From: Epiperipatus broadwayi | Lineage: Eukaryota > Animalia > Onychophora | NCBI GenBank assembly: GCA_028023455.1 | Contig: JAQFVV010000003.1 | Span: forward strand, 17,856,001 to 17,920,000 | Reading direction: 5' to 3' | DNA length: 64,000 nucleotides | In this document: positions 3,840 to 42,423 of the stretch, one piece after another | How the letters are laid out: the number at the start of each line of letters is the position of its first letter | How positions within the stretch are numbered: position 1 is the stretch's first letter | Position numbers and translations under genes: made by a program | The notes under the pieces: generated by a model | Told to the model about the DNA's origin: nothing | What the model saw: the letters and a program-made list of their open reading frames with translations, nothing else | Database searches by the model: none

Positions 3840-6421
3840 TATTCCAGTGCATGACAAAATTCATAGCCAAAATTATATATGCATCAGAATAAATAATTAT
3901 AAAAAAATTCATTGTGAAAGATACAAATATATAGATAATTGAACTAAATTAATAAGTGATCGTTACAAACCAAAATAAATATTTCTCATATTCTAATTGA
4001 AGGACAAAGGTCCTGATAATATTGTGACATATGTGTGCTATTTCAGTTAATAGTATTCTCTTCTTTCATTTCAGTCTCTGTTGTAAGATTTTTATTTAAA
4101 AACCTGTATAATGTAACACTGTATAGAATTGTTCATTGTATTATATCCCAATATACTCTCTTTATAATTATAAGTGGTTCTCTAAATTATATAATCCCAA
4201 TTTATATAATTTTTAACTTATGTAAACAACTCCCAGAATCTTATAATGCTTCTTAATTTATATTTGTTTCCCCCTGTACTTGTTTTATTTTCACAGAATT
4301 CATTTGCATATTATGTAATTTACCAATTTCAACCATTTTTATATAGTCATTGTTCATATATATGTATACATGTGTGTGTTTATATGTATATTAAAGATTT
4401 CTTAGATATTTAAGATATAAGCATTGAAAATATAAATTTTCCCATGTAAAAAAAATAGATATAATCTCAGTTATGATAGAATCAGGCAACCACCAATTAA
4501 ACCATATGATCTAGCATTTGATTGCCTGCTTACATCTTACCTGAAATTTTATCTAGTTTATAATAAACTAAAACCAACAGAAAGGCAATTCCATCTTTGT
4601 TGAGCATGAAAAAATAATAGTGCATAGATTTAAACCCATGTCTGCTAACATTGTTTACTCAGAAAGACAATGCTAAATACAAGATCAGAGAAGCATTACA
4701 CATAGCAAGCAATCCTAAGTTCATAAATCGAAGAGAAGCAGGCTTTGCCCTGTCCCAAAAATGGCAGTTATAACTAATTTGCATTATTTTGCATAAATTT
4801 TCCTTCTAACAATACAGTTTTTAACAAGATAGTAGCTATGAATATGAGAGCAAAAAGTCTCTAGAAAGCACTCAGCTAAAATAGTATATTTGCTTTCGAT
4901 TATATATACTAGCTTCATTATCTGTGCGTACAACACATATATATATAGTATAGTTTATTATATGAAAAAATTCCAATAATGTTTAATATATATGTTTACT
5001 ATTAAATAATGTAGCATTAGATACATATTTCATTTAGACAGAAAAAAACTATGCTTTCACCTATGTGTTATAAAGAAACAACCTTCACATTCTTTTAAAA
5101 CATTTATTGATGTGGAAGGTTGTCTATTTATAGTGTATACATAGAAAGGTAGTTTTCTTTCATCTAAATTACATGTATATGTTTATATATAAATGATATG
5201 TAAATTAACACTGACCTAAGTTATTATTTATCTCAAGATAGGAGAATATATTTTACAATATACACTTGTTAAAAAATATTTTATTTAAACTTTTCAACTG
5301 TTAGTAATAGCATACAGATTAGTATTTCAAGTGGAACCAGTATCTTCTCTTCTTGAAATAGTGCTGACCTGTTAAGTACACTACTAGCATGTAAATTGAA
5401 CCTGTATCTTCATATTTGAGAATATTGAATTTAAACTGCTCTTATAACAATAGCAAATAATCCCATAAGACAACCTAGTTTGAGCATTTATAATGTTTGG
5501 CTTGTCTTTAGGAAAAGGTAAAAAAATTAGGAAATCATCATAGACAAGCATATGAAATTTCCATAGCCTAGTTAATTTAGAGTGTCACTTTAAAATCAAA
5601 TTAACAAATCTAAAAATCCAAGTTTGATTGCCATGCACACCTGAAAAAGAGAAAATAATACTACTCAAAATATTATGTTATATAATAAACAGAATATTTC
5701 ATATTACTTGTTTTGATGCATAATGAAATAGGTAAGAATAGAAAATTTTATAGAGATAGATGGTTTGTAAGAACAGGATAGTATTGGAGGCAGGTAGTAA
5801 AGCTTTTAGGGACATAAAATGGATAGTAAGAGTTAAAAGAATTGAAGTGAGTTATTAATGTAACAAATTAAGTAGTCATTATTAAACGGAAATAAATTTA
5901 ATTCTTTATGTATATTTGTGTGTGTGATAATATAGATTCACATATTAAATATATTAATTCATATAAATAATATTTTAATAAGGAAAAATAATATGTTTAA
6001 TAATAGGTAATATATTTAGTATATATTATGTTTGTCAAATATGTTTAAAAAGTAATCAAATAATGAGCTCAAGTCTATAATTTGATAAGAATTTAAATTT
6101 TATTTTTATATGCTTTAATTAAACAAGGATGTTTTTAGTTTAATTAAAAATTAGAAGGCAATTGTAGAAATAACAACATGAAGAAATTGTTATCTACTGA
6201 CATTGTATGTAACCATGAGATTTCCAGGTTTTGGTTATAAAAAAAGATTAGAAGCTTGAAAATTTTTATTTATTATTAATTAATGTAAATTTAATAACAA
6301 CATTTGAGTGGCCAGTATTCTAAAGAATCAAGCAAAAAAAAAAGATTACTATCTTATTCCTGCGTTAGCTATAGAAGAGAGTGTGAAACAGAAAAAAAGT
6401 TAAGATAATATTTTTTTGGCT

Positions 6422-6510
6422 GAACTGTTAGCCGAGAGGTCAACGCAGCTACCTTGCAAGCAAGTAGTTGGTTACAGGTGGTTGTTGCGGGTCGCCTCCC
6501 GGCCGATGCT
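6422..6510 (+). ncRNA. tRNA-like gene or pseudogene (copy 1) with an 18-nt anticodon-loop insertion; anticodon TGC or GCA depending on register
   Basis: A-box TAGCCGAGAGG; anticodon stem GCTAC/GTGGT (or CTACC/GGTGG); T-arm GCGGG-TCGCCT-CCCG; 3' CCGATGCT; the 5' acceptor strand is degenerate; colinear with 8899-8987 and 6586-6657. Confidence 0.6.
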
Positions 6511-6585
6511 ATGACATAAGGAGAAAAAAAAATGATTTTTTTACCTTATAAAGATTGTTCAATTTAAGAATATCCAATTAGTCAA

Positions 6586-6657
6586 GCGTTGGTGGCTTAG
6601 CGGTTAGGATAGCTGCCTTCCAAGCAGCCGGCCCGGGTTCGCTTCCCGGTCAACGCT
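6586..6657 (+). tRNA. tRNA-Gly-TCC: tRNA-Gly(TCC), non-canonical variant (gene or young pseudogene)
   Basis: Cloverleaf: acceptor GCGTTGG/TCAACGC, anticodon arm GCTGC-CTTCCAA-GCAGC (TCC at 6619-6621), T arm CCGGG-TTCGCTT-CCCGG; closely resembles the eukaryotic Gly-TCC consensus, but has a weak D stem, C at position 58 and T at 73. Confidence 0.8.
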
Positions 6658-8898
6658 TTGACATATAAAAAAAAAGAACATCCAATTAAACAACTAAAGA
6701 TTCCATTCGATCTGTTCCCATGGATTTCAGAAAGTGTTCCTATAAAATGTTTCTGCACACATCAAGGAAAAAGTCTGAATTTTAATTAGGGAGGGAAACT
6801 TGTCAAATTTCTGATTGCTGACCTGTAAGATTTAAAATCCAATACTGCTTATCACTCCCTTTACTTTCCAAGGAAAGAAAAAGAAAAATGAACTTAAAGC
6901 CATAAAATATGCATATTTTAAGTGTAATTTAACAAAAGTGTTTCTACTAATTTATTCAGTAATATTTACTAAGGCTTTAACCTCAAGACTATGCGTGTAA
7001 AAATGCGATGCCTTAGTAAATATTACTTACGTAATCAATGTGCGTTTAAATAAATTTATAATTTATTCAGCCAAGACTGTAAGTATATAATATTTTTTAT
7101 CTGTTTTGGAATTTTCAAAGGAAAGAAACCTAAAACTTTACTTGAAAAAACTGCAACTTTTATTCATGTATATATCAACTATAGATAGTTACTGTCATTT
7201 ATCAATTTTAGTATTAATGTCATTTATAAATTATAGATTGTTAAAATATCATAGGTTTCCATTTTTCTACATAGGATTGTTGTAAAGTTAAGAGACAATG
7301 TTAAAAATAATTATTATAAGGGAAGCGTTGTTGAAATTATAATCTGAGTTTATCCGCTCGCTTGCTTTTCGGAAAAAAAAAAAAAAAGAGAGACAAAGGG
7401 TATATGTTTAGTTTTAAAAAATCTAACAGAGTAATTAAATAAAATCCTTATATCTGATAAGCATTCTAAATATAGATTAAATTTTAAACTAATCGCACTT
7501 TAACTTAATTTTCTTGCTCTAATTTATAAATGGCTTAAATTAAAAATTAATCTAACTTATATTAATTTTTCCCAAATAATAAATATATTCTTAATAAAAA
7601 AAGAATTGTCTTAAATATTGAATCATTTATACATATATGTGCATGCTGAGGAGTGAGTATAAAAATATTTAGATAGTTGCCCATGTTCAGTCCATGAATG
7701 ATGCAATCAATACTATATAATTAGTAACTGTGAGTTAGCAAAAGCTATAATGGTATTGATATATAAAGTGAAATGATATACAGTACTCTTAAACCTAATG
7801 TAATAAAGCCATTTAATTATATCTCATCATTGCGGTTAATTTGAATTACATAAACAAAGTTGTTTGAACCTTAGTTTTGCCTGCGTTTAAAAGTTGTTTG
7901 GTTATTGATTAGACCTTATACTAAAGAAATCAATGTTTTGAGCTGAGCTATGAATACTTATGTTTATATATAATGAATATTATAAATTAAAATATCCCAA
8001 AGAAAATATAAGAAAGTAGTAAAATAAGCCCACAGCCAATTGTATGATGAATTATATAAGTTCCAGATTTTTCTGTAATCTAATGGCATCCAACCATATT
8101 GGTCTAAAGCACCTGCATATAAGGATGATGCAGAGAATACAATATAAATAATCATAAAATTAATGTGTTAGTTATTGCCAATAGTTACATATATATGAGG
8201 AGTTTAAATAGTTTTAATTTTTCTAAAGATAAATTACTGCTAAAATACAATCAACACAAATTTTCAGACAAACACTATTCTCTAATGTAATTTTCATTAA
8301 ATATTTTGATATATTTATTTTATTTATCCTGTAATAATTCAGGGATCTTTATTTTTTTACGCTTGATTAGTTTCCGGAAAAATTGCATGTAGATTGAATT
8401 TGTGATCAACGTTTAATTAATATTATAGATTAATAAAAGTGCATAATTTATTTTTAAATATTGATTTATGCTGCTGAAACATGTACACTCAAAAAAAGAA
8501 ATATATGCATTTGAATTGTGCCATAACCAGGGAGTACTTCTAACTCTCTAGATTACCACAGAAAATAATATGCTTATTTTAGACAACCATAAAACTGTCA
8601 AGCGACTATCAGTGCTAATCAGGAGATAAATGTCATCTTTCAGATACATAGTGAATAGAATTAACATTATAGAAAAGTATCTTTACAAATAACAAGCATC
8701 ATTTTTTCAAGTGATAAATCTTAAATATTTAGATATTAATATCATGGACAAGTTAAACACTGACAATCATTTATTAAACATGTTAAATTTCATATATTTT
8801 TTATGTATAGTGAAGTCATGATATCCATTACATTTTATTTCAAGCGCCCTTTGAGTATATTGTACATCATGTATAATAAGCTCGTTTCGTATTGTCAA

Positions 8899-8987
8899 GC
8901 ATTGTTAGCCGAGAGGTTAGTGCAGCCGCCTTGCAAACAAGCAATTGTTTGCAGACGGTTGTTGCAGGTTCGCCTCCTGCCGATGCT
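8899..8987 (+). ncRNA. tRNA-like gene (copy 2) with an 18-nt intron-like anticodon-loop insertion
   Basis: Acceptor (A)GCATTG/CGATGC(T), A-box TAGCCGAGAGG, T arm GCAGG-TTCGCCT-CCTGC; the insertion forms a 9-bp hairpin TGCAAACAA/TTGTTTGCA with the anticodon; TATAATAA about 27 nt upstream. Confidence 0.65.
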
Positions 8988-9130
8988 ATGACATATGGAA
9001 AAACAAAACTTTGATTACATCAGAATAAATATTACCCATTGAATTGCAAGCATACAGTATTTTTTAATATGCATATATATAGCACAGACATTTATATATA
9101 TATATATAATATGCATCTATAAATTAAAAT

Positions 9131-11860
9131 TATCATCATTGTCAACCATTATTAATATACTGCAGGATGAAGATCTCCAAATTCAATCCATCTCTGATCT
9201 ATAGCCTCTTTTCTCCACTCCTGCACACTTTTTTTATTTCATCCATCTATCTCACATATCGTCTATTTCTGGGTCTTTTACAATCTCTTGGAATCCCATT
9301 TGATTTCAATTGTCCATCTATTATCATCTCTTCTAGCAATATGTCCAGCCCAACTCCTAATAACTCTTGCAACATTTCCTGATGCTCTAAAGTATTATTT
9401 GCAAAAACAACTACACTATTTTCAAAATCTAAGTGACTTACATAATCTCCATTTACTTTTACTTTTTTAGCTTCCCATTTTAATCCACAAAATACTTCTT
9501 ACAGCACTGCTGTAAAAAGTTTTGGAAATATGGAGTCACCCTGTCTTATACTCTTCTCAATATTAACCTTCGTAGTATCGTTATGTAATTTAATTCTTGC
9601 TATTGCATTTTTATAAATATTCTTCAGAGTATGGCAGTATCCTGGGTCGATATCTTAATAATCCAATGCTTTAATTGCTGAAGAAATGCTTATAGAATCA
9701 AATGGCTTTTCGTAATCTACAAATCAAAGCATAATGGCAACTCATACTCATTGGTCCTTTCTATAATTTCTCTCAATATTTGGATATGATCTATTGTTTT
9801 ACTTTTAAATCCAGTTTGTTCTCTTGGTTGGTTGAAATCCAACATTCTCTGTAGACGAGTTGTAATTATCTTGGTAAAAATTTTGTATAAAATTGATAAA
9901 ATGCTAATAGATCTGTAATTTCTAATATCTTCCTTATCATCTTTTTAAAATATTAATGTTAATACTGCATTTTTTCAATCATCTGGTACATCTTTATCAT
10001 TTAGACTTTTGGTATATAACTTTGCCAAAAAATTTCTATTTCTTCACCTGCCATTTTCAATATATCAATTATAATTCCATCATTACCTGGAGCCTTTCCT
10101 TTCTTCATAAATTTAACTGCATGTCTCACTTCTTCATTTAAAATTCTGGACAATTCAGAAGATATAATAAATGTAGGAAGTACTGGTTCTTTATTATTAT
10201 ATAATTCTTGATAGAACTTTTCTTCCCATTTTATTATGTCATTTCTCTTTTTAGTAATAATTCCATCTTCTTTTCTTATTGCAGATATAAGTTTCCTACC
10301 AATATCAAAATGTTGTTTTACACTCTTGAGACTTTTATTCTCTTCTACAGCTTTCCTTACCAGTTCACAATTATACTTTCTTATATCATTATCAACTCTT
10401 TTTAACACCACTTTAAAAAATTTGAGATATTCAATCCTTTTTAATGCATCATTTTTATATATCTTCATATTCATTCTTTTCTTCATAAATTCTTTAGTCT
10501 CAATAGAACTTTTATTGATCAATTGCTGCTTTTTTCTACCAGCTATCATTGTTGCAGTTTTTAAAAGTGTATCAGTTATTTTCCTATTAATTTCATTCAA
10601 ATCTGAATCATGTTCAAAATCTACTAATACTTGAAACTGATTTGTAAGTTCTAATCTAAATTCATTAGAATGTTTCTGAAGATTAGGAATATCAACTAAG
10701 TATTGTTTTTTTAATAATTTTTGTCTCTCTGGTTTTGCATTAACATGTATCTTCTTACATCTTATTAATGAATAATCACTTCCTGTGTTGAATTTAATAA
10801 GGACATTACAATCTTGAAATATGTATTTTCTATTAGTCAAAATATAATCTAATTCTGCTATACTTTCATTTGAATGCTTCCACATCCATTTCCTTTTAAA
10901 AATTTTCTCAAAAAAGTAATTCATAATATAAAGTTTTTCTTTTTCTGCAAACTTCACAAGTCTATGTCCTCTCTTATTTCTATTACTATAACCAAATTTA
11001 TCTATAGAACTTTCATCTTTCATTTGTTTATCAATTCTTGCATTAAAGTCTCCCATAACAATTGAAAAATGTTGTTTAGTCTGATCAAAAGCCTTTTGTA
11101 CATCCACATAAAAATCTTCTACTACTTCATTGCTATAAGCACTTGTTGGAGCATTAACTGAATTATCTGCATTTGGTATCTGCTATTAAGTTGAATACTA
11201 ATCTTCCCACTCTGTCTGATATACCATCAATCTCCACAATGTTGTTCTTCCATTTTTTATTTATAATGAATCCTACTCCACTTGTACTTCCAATATTTGT
11301 GCCTTTGCAGTGGAGTACATATCCACTTTTTAAATCAATTGTCTCTTCACCTTTTCTTCTAACTTCACAAAGTCAAAATAATGTCCCATTTAATATGACA
11401 CTTCTTCCAATTCTTGTCATCTTTCTTCACTTGAAAGTAATCTGCAGTTGTAAATGCCTAAATAAAAACGTCATCATCAAATGGCAGCCTCTGTCTGCAA
11501 TAAGGGGATTAGCACTCTCTGCCTTTGGCCATCAACTGCTGCCTCCTGGGAATAAGGGTCATGATTTATTTTTGTCTGACATTATTGTATATATCTATTA
11601 GAAAAAAAATTTCATTCATGCACACACACACATTCAATCAGCTTTATCAGGCAACTGAGAAGAAAGACTATGATGTTTCTTGATCTTAAACTCAGAGGTA
11701 AAAAGCCAATAAACTCACCACACTGGCTAATGCATGTTGGTAAGCAGCTCATCCATGTTATTATACTATATGAATAATCACATAGTAATAATAGCTGCAA
11801 TGACAAGAATGTATGAAGTGGATATTAGGAATTTGGCTTACTTGGTTCCTTTAAGGCCTC
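9131..11860 (-). mobile_element. RTE-clade non-LTR retrotransposon, near full length, decayed, with an internal deletion in the C-terminal part
   Basis: ORF 10001-11107: APE endonuclease motifs (GDFNA, LDYIL, GSDY) and GKAPGNDG; further frameshifted RT motifs DYEKPFDS and RQGDSIFPKLF; (GAT)n-like 3' tail near 9132; 5' UTR homologous to 38476-38740. Confidence 0.9.
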
Positions 11861-39996: not shown

Positions 39997-42423
39997 AGAT
40001 TTAAAAAAAATTAATGTATTTAACTAAAGATATTATTCTTAAACAAATGAGTAGAAGATGTTTGGGCACTTGTAAATTCAATTGTAATAAATTAAAAATA
40101 ATTATACAGTTTTATATGAGAATATATAAGAAATGCAGTATTTATAAAACTAATAGACTGAATAAAGCTTATATAATAATTTTCAAAACTTTATTGAGTT
40201 ACATTTATGCTACATTACAAAAGTTTATATTCATTTTGCTTATTGTTTGTTATGACTATTAATGCTATATATGAAAAATTAATATTTAGAATTAATTATA
40301 AAATATAAAATTGTAAATATTCAATAAGTAAATAATAAATAAAATAAAATGTGATACATAATTTAATAAAGAAAATGTTTGTGAAAATGCATTATTATTT
40401 TGTATACAAATTATAAATGCAAAAAAGTTCATACGGAATAAGAAAACCCACATGAACATTATTATATATAAACTTATATATGCTTGATCCATGTTAAAAA
40501 TTAAAACTATATGTATATACTTATATATATATATATGTCTAAATGTGAAATATGTAAGCATAGAATCATATATATATATATATATGTGATAGCTATTGTC
40601 ATGGCGATGGCAAAATTACATTACGAATACATTTTGCAAAATAATTGCAAAATAACATGTGTGCTTACTTAGACACTAATATACATACAAAATGAAAATA
40701 AACAAATGAGGAATGAAATATTCATATGCAGAAAATGATTATGTGAATAAAGATTTCATTTATTCAGTAAATACACACTGATATATTCATTTAACTAATC
40801 TTAGTAGAGGAGACAATCCCAAAAATTTATAAATAAAGCAAAAAAATAAATAAATTAGTATGTAAATGAAGTCAATAATATGAAAAAAAGATAATTGACT
40901 CTCTCTGACACACTCTTGTTTAAAGAAGTAGAAAAGAAAAAGAATTAACTGACGAGATAAAAATAATACAAGTGTCAATTTTTTTTTAATTACTTTGATT
41001 TATTAAAAGTTATGAAAATACTTATTATATTCGGATATTCTTTTAATATGAAGCACTAGACCAAGGCAAGTAGCACATCAACTCTTATTCTTGATACATT
41101 ATCCAGTGTTTTCTTTGACAACTATTAGAAGCTGCTAAAGAGGGAAAAAAACAGAATCTTGCAGATAAATTGCCAAGAAAAATGTTTGTTTCAAGCAAAA
41201 TAATATACTAACACTACATGTAACTATACTCAATGTTAATGTGACAATAACTAAAAGAGGGAAGATATTCAAAGGAAGAAGAAAGACTTTCAATACAAAA
41301 TGGTATAAAAGGGAGAAACTTTAATGCTTTATATTGTTTTTGAATATTCAAGATGAATAAATAAAAAGACATATTAAACTATAAAAGAATATAGAATGAA
41401 AACAGAAATTTGAGATTGTCAAATAAGATATTATATTTTGTTCACGAATGAATGAGAATAATAAAATCTTTAAATTTGAATTATTCATTGAGCGATCTAT
41501 GTTATAATGCATAGAGAACAATATGAATGAAACTATTTCAATGAAAGTTGCACTGAAATAACTAATAATTTCTTTTTCATATACATATATGAGAAGTTAT
41601 AATGAACAACTAGAGAAATAAAAGATTTGAACTTTTGTTCTGATATCCAACTTGAGAAGTATTCAAGAGAGAATTTATAAATAATACTCTATTGATTTAC
41701 TTTTTTTTATTAATATTTTATTATTTATTAATTTGTTTGATTATTTTTTATGCATGTACTAAAGCAAATATTGGATATAATGCTTTTCTATTTTTTAAAA
41801 AAATATATGAGTTAATTATATTTAATTAGTATACAGTCATAATACCTTTTGTTTTATATAACACATGCTAATAATTATACAGCATTAGTACCACACATAT
41901 GAGTCACAGAAAGAAAGCACCCCATAGCTAAGAACATGCTCTACAATGTGCAAAGTTTGGAATGTGAGGTTATAGAAATATGTGTTTGTTAATACACCTA
42001 TTGTTGTGATTTTTATGTACAAAATCCCAAATACTACTCTTCAATTTTACAGTTATATAACTATTGATTATTTATTTATAACAGATAATGCTAAAACTAT
42101 CATTTGTTTCTCATTTTTTATTATCAACATCACTAGTTGGATGCTTTGTACATAGTTACCGATACAATATATATACACACTTAAAAAAAAACATTCAAAG
42201 TATACTTAATGCTGGTATTAAAAAGTATGCATGTAAAAATTGAAATATTAAGACAAAAATATATAGAGATTATGATATTTTTAGCTTTAAAATAATTTTT
42301 TTTATTAGACAACAAACCTGGTCTACTGTTTAATGTTTCAACATTTACTAAATAAATATAAGAATAGATAGATATTCATAAATATTACCAAAATCATACT
42401 TTTTTTTAATATCCTATAAATAC

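Follow-up and report, generated by a model that had tools for sequence, protein, structure and literature searches.

The window analysed here, a stretch of 64,000 nucleotides from the genome of the velvet worm Epiperipatus broadwayi, carries two tRNA-like elements containing an extra block of 18 nt on the 3' side of the anticodon (copy 1 and copy 2), together with a neighbouring Gly(TCC)-type element devoid of this block (Table 1). A preliminary description of the same DNA had presented the former as two tRNA-Gly-related genes with an intron-like hairpin and a switched anticodon, extending from 6422 to 6510 and from 8899 to 8987. These limits had to be revised, as the units are longer (6425-6532 and 8894-9008) and include the leader (copy 2), the trailer and the A-tail. 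The alignment with the Gly(TCC)-like neighbour could be reproduced over the tRNA-like part with a single gap of 18 nt (identity 64.8% in copy 1, 66.2% in copy 2), but it does not run position by position as had been claimed, since the first 8-9 nt of copy 1 are non-homologous (nhmmer starts at model position 9). The loop CTTGCAA, from which TGC or GCA can be read, is found in both copies as described, together with a T at position 73. G3:U70, the alanine identity element, is likewise missing from both: copy 2 displays A3:U70, and a homologous position 3 is lacking in copy 1. In both copies, position 58 of the T-loop is a C, the D stem has 2 bp and C31.A39 forms a mismatch. The D-loop is Leu/Ser-like in appearance.

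Table 1. Elements and sequence features of the window (coordinates relative to its first nucleotide)
Feature	Position	Strand	Remarks
Copy 1, older insert-type SINE	6425..6532	+	Homologous 5' end missing (5'-truncated or rearranged); A-tail 6524-6532
5' target-site duplication of the Gly-type copy, AAGAATATCCAATTA	6566..6580	+	14/15 match to 6674-6688; adjoins the first base of the element
Gly(TCC)-type sister SINE copy	6581..6675	+	Leader GTCAA, tRNA-Gly-like head with C58, trailer TTGACATAT, A-tail
3' target-site duplication of the Gly-type copy, AAGAACATCCAATTA	6674..6688	+	Match to 6566-6580
Copy 2, full-length insert-type SINE	8894..9008	+	Leader GTCAA, tRNA-like head, trailer TATGACATATGG, A-rich tail
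A-box-like segment of copy 2, TAGCCGAGAGG	8906..8916	+	10/11 match to the textbook A box
Hairpin of copy 2	8932..8953	+	9-bp stem 8932-8940/8945-8953, GCAA loop
B-box-like segment of copy 2, GGTTCGCCTCC	8967..8977	+	C replaces A58; 10/11 against GGTTCGANNCC
A-rich tail of copy 2, AAAAACAAAA	8999..9008	+	Read from the sequence

Copy 2 is matched by the family profile over positions 8894-9002 (nhmmer, 121 bits, model positions 1-110) and shows 9 differences from the family consensus over 106 positions (8.5%), 4-5 of which are CpG transitions. The textbook consensus of the A box is TRGCNNAGTGG and that of the B box GGTTCGANNCC; the corresponding segments of copy 2 lie 50 nt apart, each with 10 of 11 positions in agreement, and most positions of the A-box-like segment are at least 90% conserved across the family. 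The perfect 9-bp pairing between the insertion and the anticodon loop (8932-8940/8945-8953) noted in the preliminary description was confirmed. This hairpin includes the anticodon triplet as well as the greater part of the 18-nt block (8937-8954), and owes its perfection only to two variants of this copy, G44>A and G55>T. The complete element is far more stable when folded than its shuffles (z -6.0), with the acceptor stem or the T stem left one pair short by a 1-nt deletion. The search for a target-site duplication adjoining copy 2 returned nothing convincing, only weak or low-complexity matches.

Copy 1 is matched over positions 6425-6524 (92.6 bits, model positions 9-109) and departs from the consensus by 10 substitutions and a 1-nt deletion (~11% over the aligned part). 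The first 7-8 model positions are missing and the acceptor stem is reduced to three Watson-Crick pairs and one wobble pair out of seven. No cloverleaf fold was obtained for this copy (z -1.4 against shuffles), its hairpin is weak (z -1.0), and its flanks gave only a weak, low-complexity candidate for a target-site duplication.

Both copies belong to a repeat family whose unit, of about 106 nt, consists of a 5-nt leader, the tRNA-like head and a 12-nt trailer, followed by the A-tail. Homology between family copies begins at GTCAAGC... and ends at ...CATATGG(A)n, the (A)n tail being located directly 3' of ...CATATGG. A 31-mer chosen across the insert has 2,429 exact matches in the genome and, when up to 3 mismatches are allowed, 41,344 matches versus 0 for the reversed control. 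A 121-nt query built around copy 2 returned 4,732 first-look candidates, the best 40 of which are 91-94% identical and distributed over many scaffolds; a two-anchor pattern has 5,500 matches, among which at least three subfamilies are visible. Within the 264 kb of flanking sequence 29 further family matches were found, against 3 in the 64-kb window. A density-based estimate of 10^5 or more copies was nevertheless set aside because flank and window samples are ascertainment-biased, and the pattern counts were used instead, as lower bounds. The working definition of a SINE includes a short (<1 kb), interspersed and non-tandem genomic repeat (SINEBase, PMC3531059), and the insert-type copies are indeed short, spread over hundreds of scaffolds and embedded in unrelated flanks. 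With more than 40,000 occurrences of the SINE in the E. broadwayi genome, the two loci are therefore ordinary repeats and not new tRNAs. They are, with a probability of about 0.94, retroposed copies, now dead, of a tRNA-derived SINE of the 'simple' type that populates the velvet worm genome. The family itself is mature, old and very abundant.

The sampled copies are biased picks, being either the best matches to copy 2 or exact in the insert, and in these the changed cells amount to 19.0% at CpG versus 3.6% at other positions (5.2 times), 84% of the CpG changes being C>T or G>A. The non-CpG change rate ranges from 0.6 to 7.4% over all regions, with broadly comparable values in the stems, the leader, the trailer and the insert; being no lower in the stems than in the three others, it indicates that the stems are not specially conserved. 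Double changes in the stems were observed 22 times versus 15.3 expected, and 80.6% of the cells are paired versus 80.2% in shuffles. A single CpG/CpG pair accounts for 10 of the 16 double-changed cells, the excess being matched by unpaired CpG site pairs, and the covariation term of RNAalifold contributes -0.57 of -22.98 kcal/mol. Covariation beyond this one CpG/CpG pair is negligible. Two candidate cases of compensatory evolution were rejected. At pair 73:85 of the T stem, the excess of G:C to A:U changes is no larger than that of unpaired CpG site pairs. At pair 44:55 of the hairpin, the 2,429 exact copies divide into G.G (2,073), G.U (257), A.G (84) and A:U (15), the latter versus 11.1 expected (Fisher p 0.19). 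Over all CpG site pairs, co-decay was observed 147 times versus 114 expected, an excess consistent with mixed copy ages. The apparent compensatory A-T versus G-C pairs come from symmetric CpG decay, a possibility against which the preliminary description had cautioned. The preliminary description had also foreseen that hundreds to thousands of neutrally diverging copies, with neither covariation beyond CpG sites nor spliced or CCA-added reads, would speak against its proposal, and on the sequence side this is what was found: more than 41,000 copies, a neutral-looking decay dominated by CpG sites, and no covariation beyond one CpG/CpG pair.

These data bear on the proposal that the loci, or the source genes of the family, produce a non-translational Pol III RNA of the BC1 type in which the hairpin and the leader-trailer clamp are functional. 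The A and B boxes are retained, RNA close to the consensus shows unusual stability (z -4.75 to -6.0) and the hairpin has been kept in at least three successful subfamilies. However, the window copies are 8.5% and ~11% diverged, with a decay of the CpG type and a 1-nt deletion that breaks the frame or the loss of the 5' end, the hairpin carries a G.G mismatch in the most abundant subfamilies, and constraint is undetectable in the copies. The proposal would at best apply to source genes and not to these loci, and it is regarded as highly improbable. Some of the structure may still be important to the source gene, since the near-consensus fold is stable (z -4.75 against shuffles) and the hairpin holds 8 of its 9 pairs in nearly all copies, although a young-to-middle-aged repeat would look alike.

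Retroposition of the SINE is documented in the family at large. Target-site duplications with a score of at least 10 were found for 47 of 101 sampled copies versus 3 of 501 shuffled flank pairs. They measure 13-22 bp (median 16) and begin in A-runs, with an A at +1 in 38 of 40 cases. For copies 1 and 2, which show no convincing target-site duplication of their own, a retroposed origin is indicated by family membership, the A-tails and the exact family boundaries. Spread of tRNA pseudogenes at the DNA level, by tandem or segmental duplication or as a DNA transposon, could be invoked for the clustering of some copies, such as those found in the 264 kb flanks, and for the tandem or head-to-head pairs seen at L062, L045 and C4:7027480/7027607. 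It is extremely improbable as a general explanation, given that homology stops exactly at the unit edges with unrelated flanks beyond, that A-tails are combined with 13-22 bp duplications of A-rich targets, that terminal inverted repeats are absent and that the copies are dispersed over hundreds of scaffolds.

The remaining proposal is that both loci are functional intron-containing tRNA genes, with an Ala-UGC or Cys-GCA anticodon on a Gly-like body, whose block would be removed by endonuclease splicing. The tests of this proposal consisted of intron-aware tools applied to the unspliced reference. With the Rfam tRNA model (RF00005), copy 2 reaches 20.7 bits, below the 29-bit threshold, copy 1 has no match at E<=10 and six near-consensus copies have none at E<=1. 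Both the Rfam gathering scan of the window and ARAGORN, in bacterial mode or with default parameters and introns, report the Gly-type element only. Under relaxed settings ARAGORN does call copy 2 as Cys(gca) with a 20-nt intron, a call that is at the level of noise because the same threshold yields 100 calls in the 64-kb window. With introns allowed, 2 of 71 family copies were called. A type II (long variable arm) or Sec tRNA was also considered and dropped, as the extra block belongs to the anticodon arm and no more than 2 of 71 copies are modelled by ARAGORN as a tRNA of this type. The family displays C.C and G.G in the D stem, C31.A39, G49.G65 and C58, and no intact cloverleaf results. A gapped two-anchor search returned 341 shorter copies versus 5,500; these are heterogeneous, each having arisen via a deletion between short direct repeats, and block-less copies are rare, representing one among many deletion classes.

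The tRNA-gene proposal may draw on the location of the block just 3' of the anticodon and its pairing with the latter as in real tRNA introns, on the relaxed Cys(gca) call and on G3:U70, present in the family consensus and in 31 of 55 sampled copies, but it is reduced to a practically negligible likelihood by the dispersal of more than 41,000 copies, with their A-tails and target-site duplications, the broken acceptor stem of copy 1, the C58, 2-bp D stem and C31.A39 mismatch of the copies, the Rfam scores below threshold or absent even near the consensus, the neutral-looking decay devoid of covariation, and the rarity of block-less copies as one of many classes of deletion between short direct repeats. 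The two loci are not genes and the 18-nt block bears no sign of an intron. The earlier suggestion that the tRNA-like family is specific to the lineage and joins an acceptor of the Gly type to a non-Gly anticodon loop was correct, but none of the identities put forward for it (a spliced or mis-decoding tRNA, a non-translational Pol III RNA gene or a young SINE precursor) fits an old and abundant SINE. A false lead is thereby removed, since neither a new spliced tRNA nor a new mis-decoding one exists at these loci.

The neighbour taken for a tRNA-Gly(TCC) gene in the preliminary description is itself a retroposed SINE copy with a 15-bp duplication at its flanks. The genome search with this Gly(TCC)-type element returned 2,488 first-look candidates, the best being 92-98% identical including leader and trailer. 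Exact anchored matches number 1,488 for the C58 form versus 22 for the A58 form, and only about 4 matches bear the canonical tRNA-Gly(TCC) sequence. By eye, the Gly(TCC)-type head differs from the canonical tRNA-Gly(TCC) of this genome at about 6 of 56 positions, and a direct comparison of the insert-type with the canonical sequence, also by eye, gives about 72% over 58 nt. The insert-type heads are 65-72% identical to the Gly(TCC)-type head over 71-72 aligned nt, and the whole units are 61-74% identical apart from the single 18-nt gap. The two SINEs have in common the leader GTCAAGCGTTG, a trailer of the kind T(A/T)TGACATAT, the A-tail, the C58 T-loop and the anticodon-stem context. In contrast to the insert type, the Gly(TCC)-type SINE lacks the 18-nt block, retains the TCC loop, reads GGCTTAGCGGTTAGGATAGC instead of AGCCGAGAGGTCAGCGCAGC in the D-arm and still scores above the Rfam tRNA threshold (30-47 bits; 46.7 bits for the copy in the window). 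Since tRNA gene finders would over-call such elements, which reach 30-47 bits and yet are SINE copies, any velvet worm tRNA census must mask them.

The following scenario would account for the origin of these elements. A source gene would have descended from tRNA-Gly with retention of its internal Pol III A and B boxes, and would have acquired a 5-nt leader and a 12-nt trailer able to pair with each other (GTCA/TGAC), thereby lengthening the acceptor helix; this clamp may have a role in blocking tRNA end-processing. The insert subfamily would have gained the 18-nt block just 3' of the anticodon, probably when the region of the repeated TTGCA/GCAG/GTTG motifs was duplicated internally or underwent slippage, and its anticodon arm would so have become a long hairpin. 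The presumed Pol III transcript, ending in an A-tail, would be reverse-transcribed at nicked A-rich sites by the enzyme of a poly(A)-type LINE, with the A-tail and the A-rich targets pointing to a putative L1-like partner, and insertion would leave the A-tail and 13-22 bp target-site duplications. Once inserted, the copies decayed in a neutral manner, with the changes concentrated at presumably methylated CpG sites. What had been described as a 'switched anticodon' (TCC to TGC) and as an 'intron' goes back to substitutions and an indel that became fixed in the source gene of the SINE, and not to a decoding tRNA; the perfect hairpin and the A-T 'compensatory' pairs of copy 2 are the chance outcome of its own post-insertion mutations.

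There is a slim chance that the source gene or genes, as opposed to the window copies, yield a stable Pol III RNA which resembles a tRNA and serves its own function. One conceivable form is an alanylatable molecule with G3:U70 and a UGC loop on a Gly-type body; it is the presence of G3:U70 and the UGC loop in the consensus that leaves this small chance of aminoacylation. The other conceivable form is a BC1-like RNA in which clamp and hairpin would prevent processing as a tRNA and make capture by the LINE machinery more likely. Should such a functional RNA exist, the hairpin would be an adaptation for retroposition and no accident.

A search of the literature for the description of an onychophoran SINE of this kind found none, and the family is therefore considered as new, although of an already known type. 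The word SINE is absent from the main text of the E. broadwayi genome paper. The present family contributes to a genome made of 71% repeats (PMC9985152). Presence or absence of the insertions should be usable as a marker system for onychophoran phylogeny. Indirectly, the family also points to CpG methylation in the germline and to an L1-like retroposition pathway, active and dependent on poly(A), in Onychophora.

The closest known systems are the simple tRNA-derived SINEs, composed of a head and an A-rich tail only, such as rodent ID, camel vic-1 and armadillo DAS-I (SINEBase, PMC3531059). The velvet worm family resembles these in its short tRNA-like head with internal A and B boxes followed almost directly by the A-tail, in its tens of thousands of dispersed copies, in target-site duplications located, like those of L1-mobilised elements, at A-rich sites, and in diagnostic substitutions and indels that are common to the copies and absent from the cellular tRNA. 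It differs in its onychophoran host, in a head derived from tRNA-Gly and not from tRNA-Ala, in the mutually pairing 5-nt leader and 12-nt trailer, and in the subfamily whose 18-nt block produces a long anticodon-arm hairpin. With intron-containing tRNA genes (Tyr-GTA, Leu-CAA, Ile-TAT and Arg-TCT) it shares extra nucleotides located 3' of the anticodon and pairing with the anticodon loop. Real genes of this sort are conserved and few, are recognised by tRNA covariance models, possess A58 together with intact stems, and carry neither A-tails nor target-site duplications; the insert-type SINE fails every one of these features that was tested. SINE subfamilies are known to be founded by internal duplications, as in the quasi-dimeric B1 versus pB1 (PMC3531059). 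In the velvet worm as in B1, a short internal insertion or duplication was fixed in the source gene and inherited by a large subfamily, with the difference that the velvet worm block measures just 18 nt and that its origin by duplication is suggested by the repeated TTGCA/AGCA/GTTG motifs.

Copies 1 and 2 of the window, the two stretches carrying an extra 18-nt block 3' of the anticodon loop CTTGCAA, both belong to an abundant, otherwise ordinary and apparently undescribed tRNA-derived SINE, and both have decayed. In this simple SINE, a tRNA-Gly-derived head containing an A-box-like segment (TAGCCGAGAGG) and, 50 nt from it, a B-box-like one (GGTTCGCCTCC) is followed by a short trailer and an A-tail; insertion took place at A-rich targets and produced duplications of 13-22 bp.

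Reading of positions 6200-9200 confirmed the two tRNA-like stretches of about 89 nt noticed in the preliminary description (6422-6510 and 8899-8987). The sequence between them, 6585-6658, is called tRNA-Gly(TCC) by both ARAGORN and Rfam (46.7 bits). All three stay in register with a single 18-nt gap, as previously proposed, in the multiple alignment of the window elements (A1), except that the first 8-9 nt of copy 1 show no relation to the family. Across the tRNA-like part, copy 1 is 64.8% and copy 2 66.2% identical to the Gly-like element. The 9 perfect base pairs reported between block and anticodon loop of copy 2 are indeed present (8932-8940 with 8945-8953), and its 104-nt unit folds at -46 kcal/mol versus -27.7 in shuffles (z -6.0); the acceptor stem of copy 1 is unable to form and its fold is no better than shuffles (z -1.4). 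A profile built from family copies detects exactly three elements in the window, listed in the table. Relative to the consensus, copy 2 is changed at 9/106 positions, including four to five CpG transitions, and copy 1 shows 10 substituted positions, a 1-nt deletion and an absent 5' end. Another interspersed repeat lies directly 3' of copy 2 (~9063-9500), with matches of 75-96% identity over 45-311 nt in the fetched loci L019, L020, L027, L028 and L029, and an (AT)n microsatellite is found at ~9075-9110.

Elements of the window and canonical tRNA-Gly(TCC) loci (C, contigs of the same genome)
Feature	Coordinates	Strand	Basis
Copy 2	8894-9002	+	family profile, 121 bits
Copy 1	6425-6524	+	family profile, 92.6 bits, starting at model position 9
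Gly-type element	6581-6672	+	family profile, 37.8 bits
Canonical tRNA-Gly(TCC)	G000:C45:6442411-6442466		internal sequence with A58
Canonical tRNA-Gly(TCC)	C6235:4930880-4930935		internal sequence with A58
Canonical tRNA-Gly(TCC)	C12455:3860618-3860673		internal sequence with A58
Canonical tRNA-Gly(TCC)	C446:427422-427477		internal sequence with A58

The Epiperipatus broadwayi assembly comprises 5,601,407,943 bp in 18,588 scaffolds and is 70.9% repetitive (PMC9985152). Searching it with 8880-9000 returned 4,732 first-look candidates, of which the best 40 were scored and found to be 91-94% identical, on many scaffolds. Upon BLAST comparison of wider flanks with 30 fetched loci, homology was limited to ~8890-9011, and the edges of the unit are sharp in the alignment, starting with GTCAAGCGTTGTTAGCCGAGAGG and ending with GATGCTATGACATATGG followed by an A-run. 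A 31-nt pattern across the extra block is matched exactly at 2,429 places genome-wide and at 41,344 with up to three mismatches (reversed control, 0), exceeding the hundreds to thousands of copies that the preliminary description associated with an ordinary SINE or pseudogene family. The two-anchor pattern GCCGAGAGG ... TGACATATGG, with a gap of 68-78, has 5,500 matches representing at least three abundant subfamilies, all containing the block, and one apparently older subfamily. Extra family copies are common in locus flanks (29 in 264 kb). Closely spaced pairs of SINE copies are also present: a Gly-like copy facing an insert-type one head to head at a distance of 5 bp (L045:1463-1680), two tandem Gly-type copies, the second directly after the A-tail of the first (L062:1501-1690), and two insert-type copies in the same orientation, 127 bp apart (G000:C4:7027480-7027698).

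The family copies are retroposed. In 47 of 101 full-length copies from the fetched loci, a flanking direct repeat that abuts the first base and comes after the A-tail scores at least 10, versus 3/501 shuffled flank pairs. The median duplication is 16 bp. The upstream flanks of 40 copies whose duplications are clear show that these start in A-runs, with A at +1 in 38/40 and at +1 to +5 in 26-38/40, the preceding base being mostly T or C. Such target starts are preferred by poly(A)-dependent, L1-like retroposition and are similar to the TT/AAAA preference of the L1 endonuclease. Copies 1 and 2 have A-tails, and their flanks hold no convincing target-site duplication.

Decay was evaluated on 68 insert-type copies (loci L002-L090) aligned to the family profile. 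Changed cells amount to 19.0% at CpG positions versus 3.6% elsewhere, a ratio of 5.2, and C>T and G>A together make up 84% of the changes at CpG. Both figures point indirectly to germline CpG methylation of repeats in this onychophoran. By region, non-CpG rates lie between 0.6% and 7.4%, and stems do not have lower rates than leader, trailer or insert. The copies thus look to decay neutrally, as anticipated for a SINE family, with CpG changes dominating and stems not spared.

The structure tested for covariation combined the proposed cloverleaf, the hairpin and the leader-trailer helix. Double changes in stems numbered 22 versus 15.3 expected under independence, and 80.6% of cells were paired versus 80.2% in shuffles. 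Ten of the 16 double-changed cells fall in one pair with CpG on both sides (G:C to A:U). In a sample chosen independently of the T arm, this pair (one-sided p 0.015) is outranked by one other of the 105 CpG site pairs, an unpaired one, which bears out the earlier caveat that apparent A-T/G-C compensation can stem from CpG deamination. Co-decay over all CpG site pairs is 147 versus 114 expected, an excess of the kind that mixed copy ages produce. The RNAalifold covariation term is -0.57 of -22.98 kcal/mol, and neither it nor the pair counts reveal covariation beyond CpG sites. Genome-wide, the pair on which the perfect hairpin of copy 2 depends is G.G in 2,073 cases, G.U in 257, A.G in 84 and A:U in 15, with no significant excess of A:U (11.1 expected, odds ratio 1.44, Fisher p 0.19). 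The abundant subfamilies are accordingly mismatched at this pair, and the perfect stem of copy 2 is a chance combination.

Intron-bearing tRNA genes with a switched anticodon, as initially proposed, are incompatible with more than 41,000 family matches, Rfam scores below threshold or absent and neutral-looking decay. On Rfam tRNA, copy 2 scores 20.7 bits, under the 29-bit threshold, copy 1 has no match at E<=10 and six near-consensus copies have none at E<=1; Gly-type copies score 30-47 bits. ARAGORN with introns at default settings finds neither copy 1 nor copy 2. Of 71 insert-type copies, it calls two when introns are allowed, reading each as Ala(tgc) and the block as extra arm. The insert-type family carries C58, C.C and G.G in the D stem, C31.A39 and G49.G65. 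Novel tRNA genes at copies 1 and 2 are accordingly refuted on the preliminary description's own terms: copy number, neutral decay and lack of covariation.

A shorter gap in the two-anchor search yields 341 shorter copies versus 5,500 full ones; those among the matches listed are a mixture of many internal deletions between short direct repeats (GCAG..GCAG, TTGCA..TTGCA, GTTG..GTTG, TTG..TTG). The TTGCA..TTGCA class loses exactly 18 nt, so that its product happens to equal that of excision at 37/38 (e.g. G000:C77:4625035-4625108, G000:C72:1323622-1323695), and could mislead searches for 'spliced' retrocopies. Only a few of the 100 matches listed belong to it, so nothing in these shorter copies points to retroposed spliced RNA. 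Also among the matches listed are relatives that lack the block and have a normal GCTGC/GCAGT anticodon stem, which would fit the ancestral form before the 18-nt addition.

G3:U70 is the main alanine identity element. The insert-type consensus (e.g. L005:1505-1610, L058:1463-1568; columns 8 and 95 of A2, the alignment of sampled copies) has it in 31/55 copies, with A:U by decay in 21/55, beside a CUUGCAA loop (UGC, Ala). On paper, the source gene of the family would have borne this element on a Gly-derived body, the simplest origin of U70 being CpG decay of the Gly-type C70 that became fixed. This curiosity concerns putative source genes, not the window copies.

The 'neighbouring tRNA-Gly(TCC)' is itself a SINE insertion, with the insert-type leader GTCAA, the trailer TTGACATAT, an A-tail and a 14/15 target-site duplication (6566-6580 and 6674-6688). 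A first-look search gave thousands of genome relatives, the best being 92-98% identical, leader and trailer included. The C58 form of its T-loop has 1,488 exact anchored matches and the A58 form 22; the canonical metazoan tRNA-Gly(TCC) internal sequence is present in only four of the latter. Given about four canonical loci against 1,488 SINE matches, tRNA-Gly would be greatly over-counted by tRNA finders in this genome.

Pol III transcription of source copies would start 5 nt upstream of tRNA +1, and pairing of the leader GTCA with the trailer TGAC would extend the acceptor helix to 11-12 bp. This helix would impede RNase P and RNase Z and would thereby account for the leader and trailer kept in the copies, and the A-tailed RNA would be used by an L1-like reverse transcriptase. 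Slippage or a small internal duplication within a source gene most likely gave rise to the 18-nt block, which would have turned the anticodon arm into a long hairpin. A subfamily with GTTGTC..TTCGCTTCC and the trailer TTTGAC is nearer to the Gly-type (e.g. G000:C2:33081241-33081332, G000:C4:4790443-4790534) and has hairpin pair 44:55 as a perfect G:C, with T34:A64 at the arm base, whereas pair 44:55 is G.G in the three abundant subfamilies; the hairpin was therefore probably perfect at the origin of the block and relaxed afterwards.

No description of SINEs of this kind in Onychophora was found in the literature, and the word SINE is absent from the main text of the E. broadwayi genome paper (PMC9985152). 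In size, copy number and tRNA similarity the element agrees with the working definition of SINEBase (PMC3531059), and it shows the hallmarks of retroposition. Its structural class is that of the 'simple' SINEs ID, vic-1 and DAS-I, and quasi-dimeric B1 provides a precedent for a subfamily founded by an internal insertion (PMC3531059).
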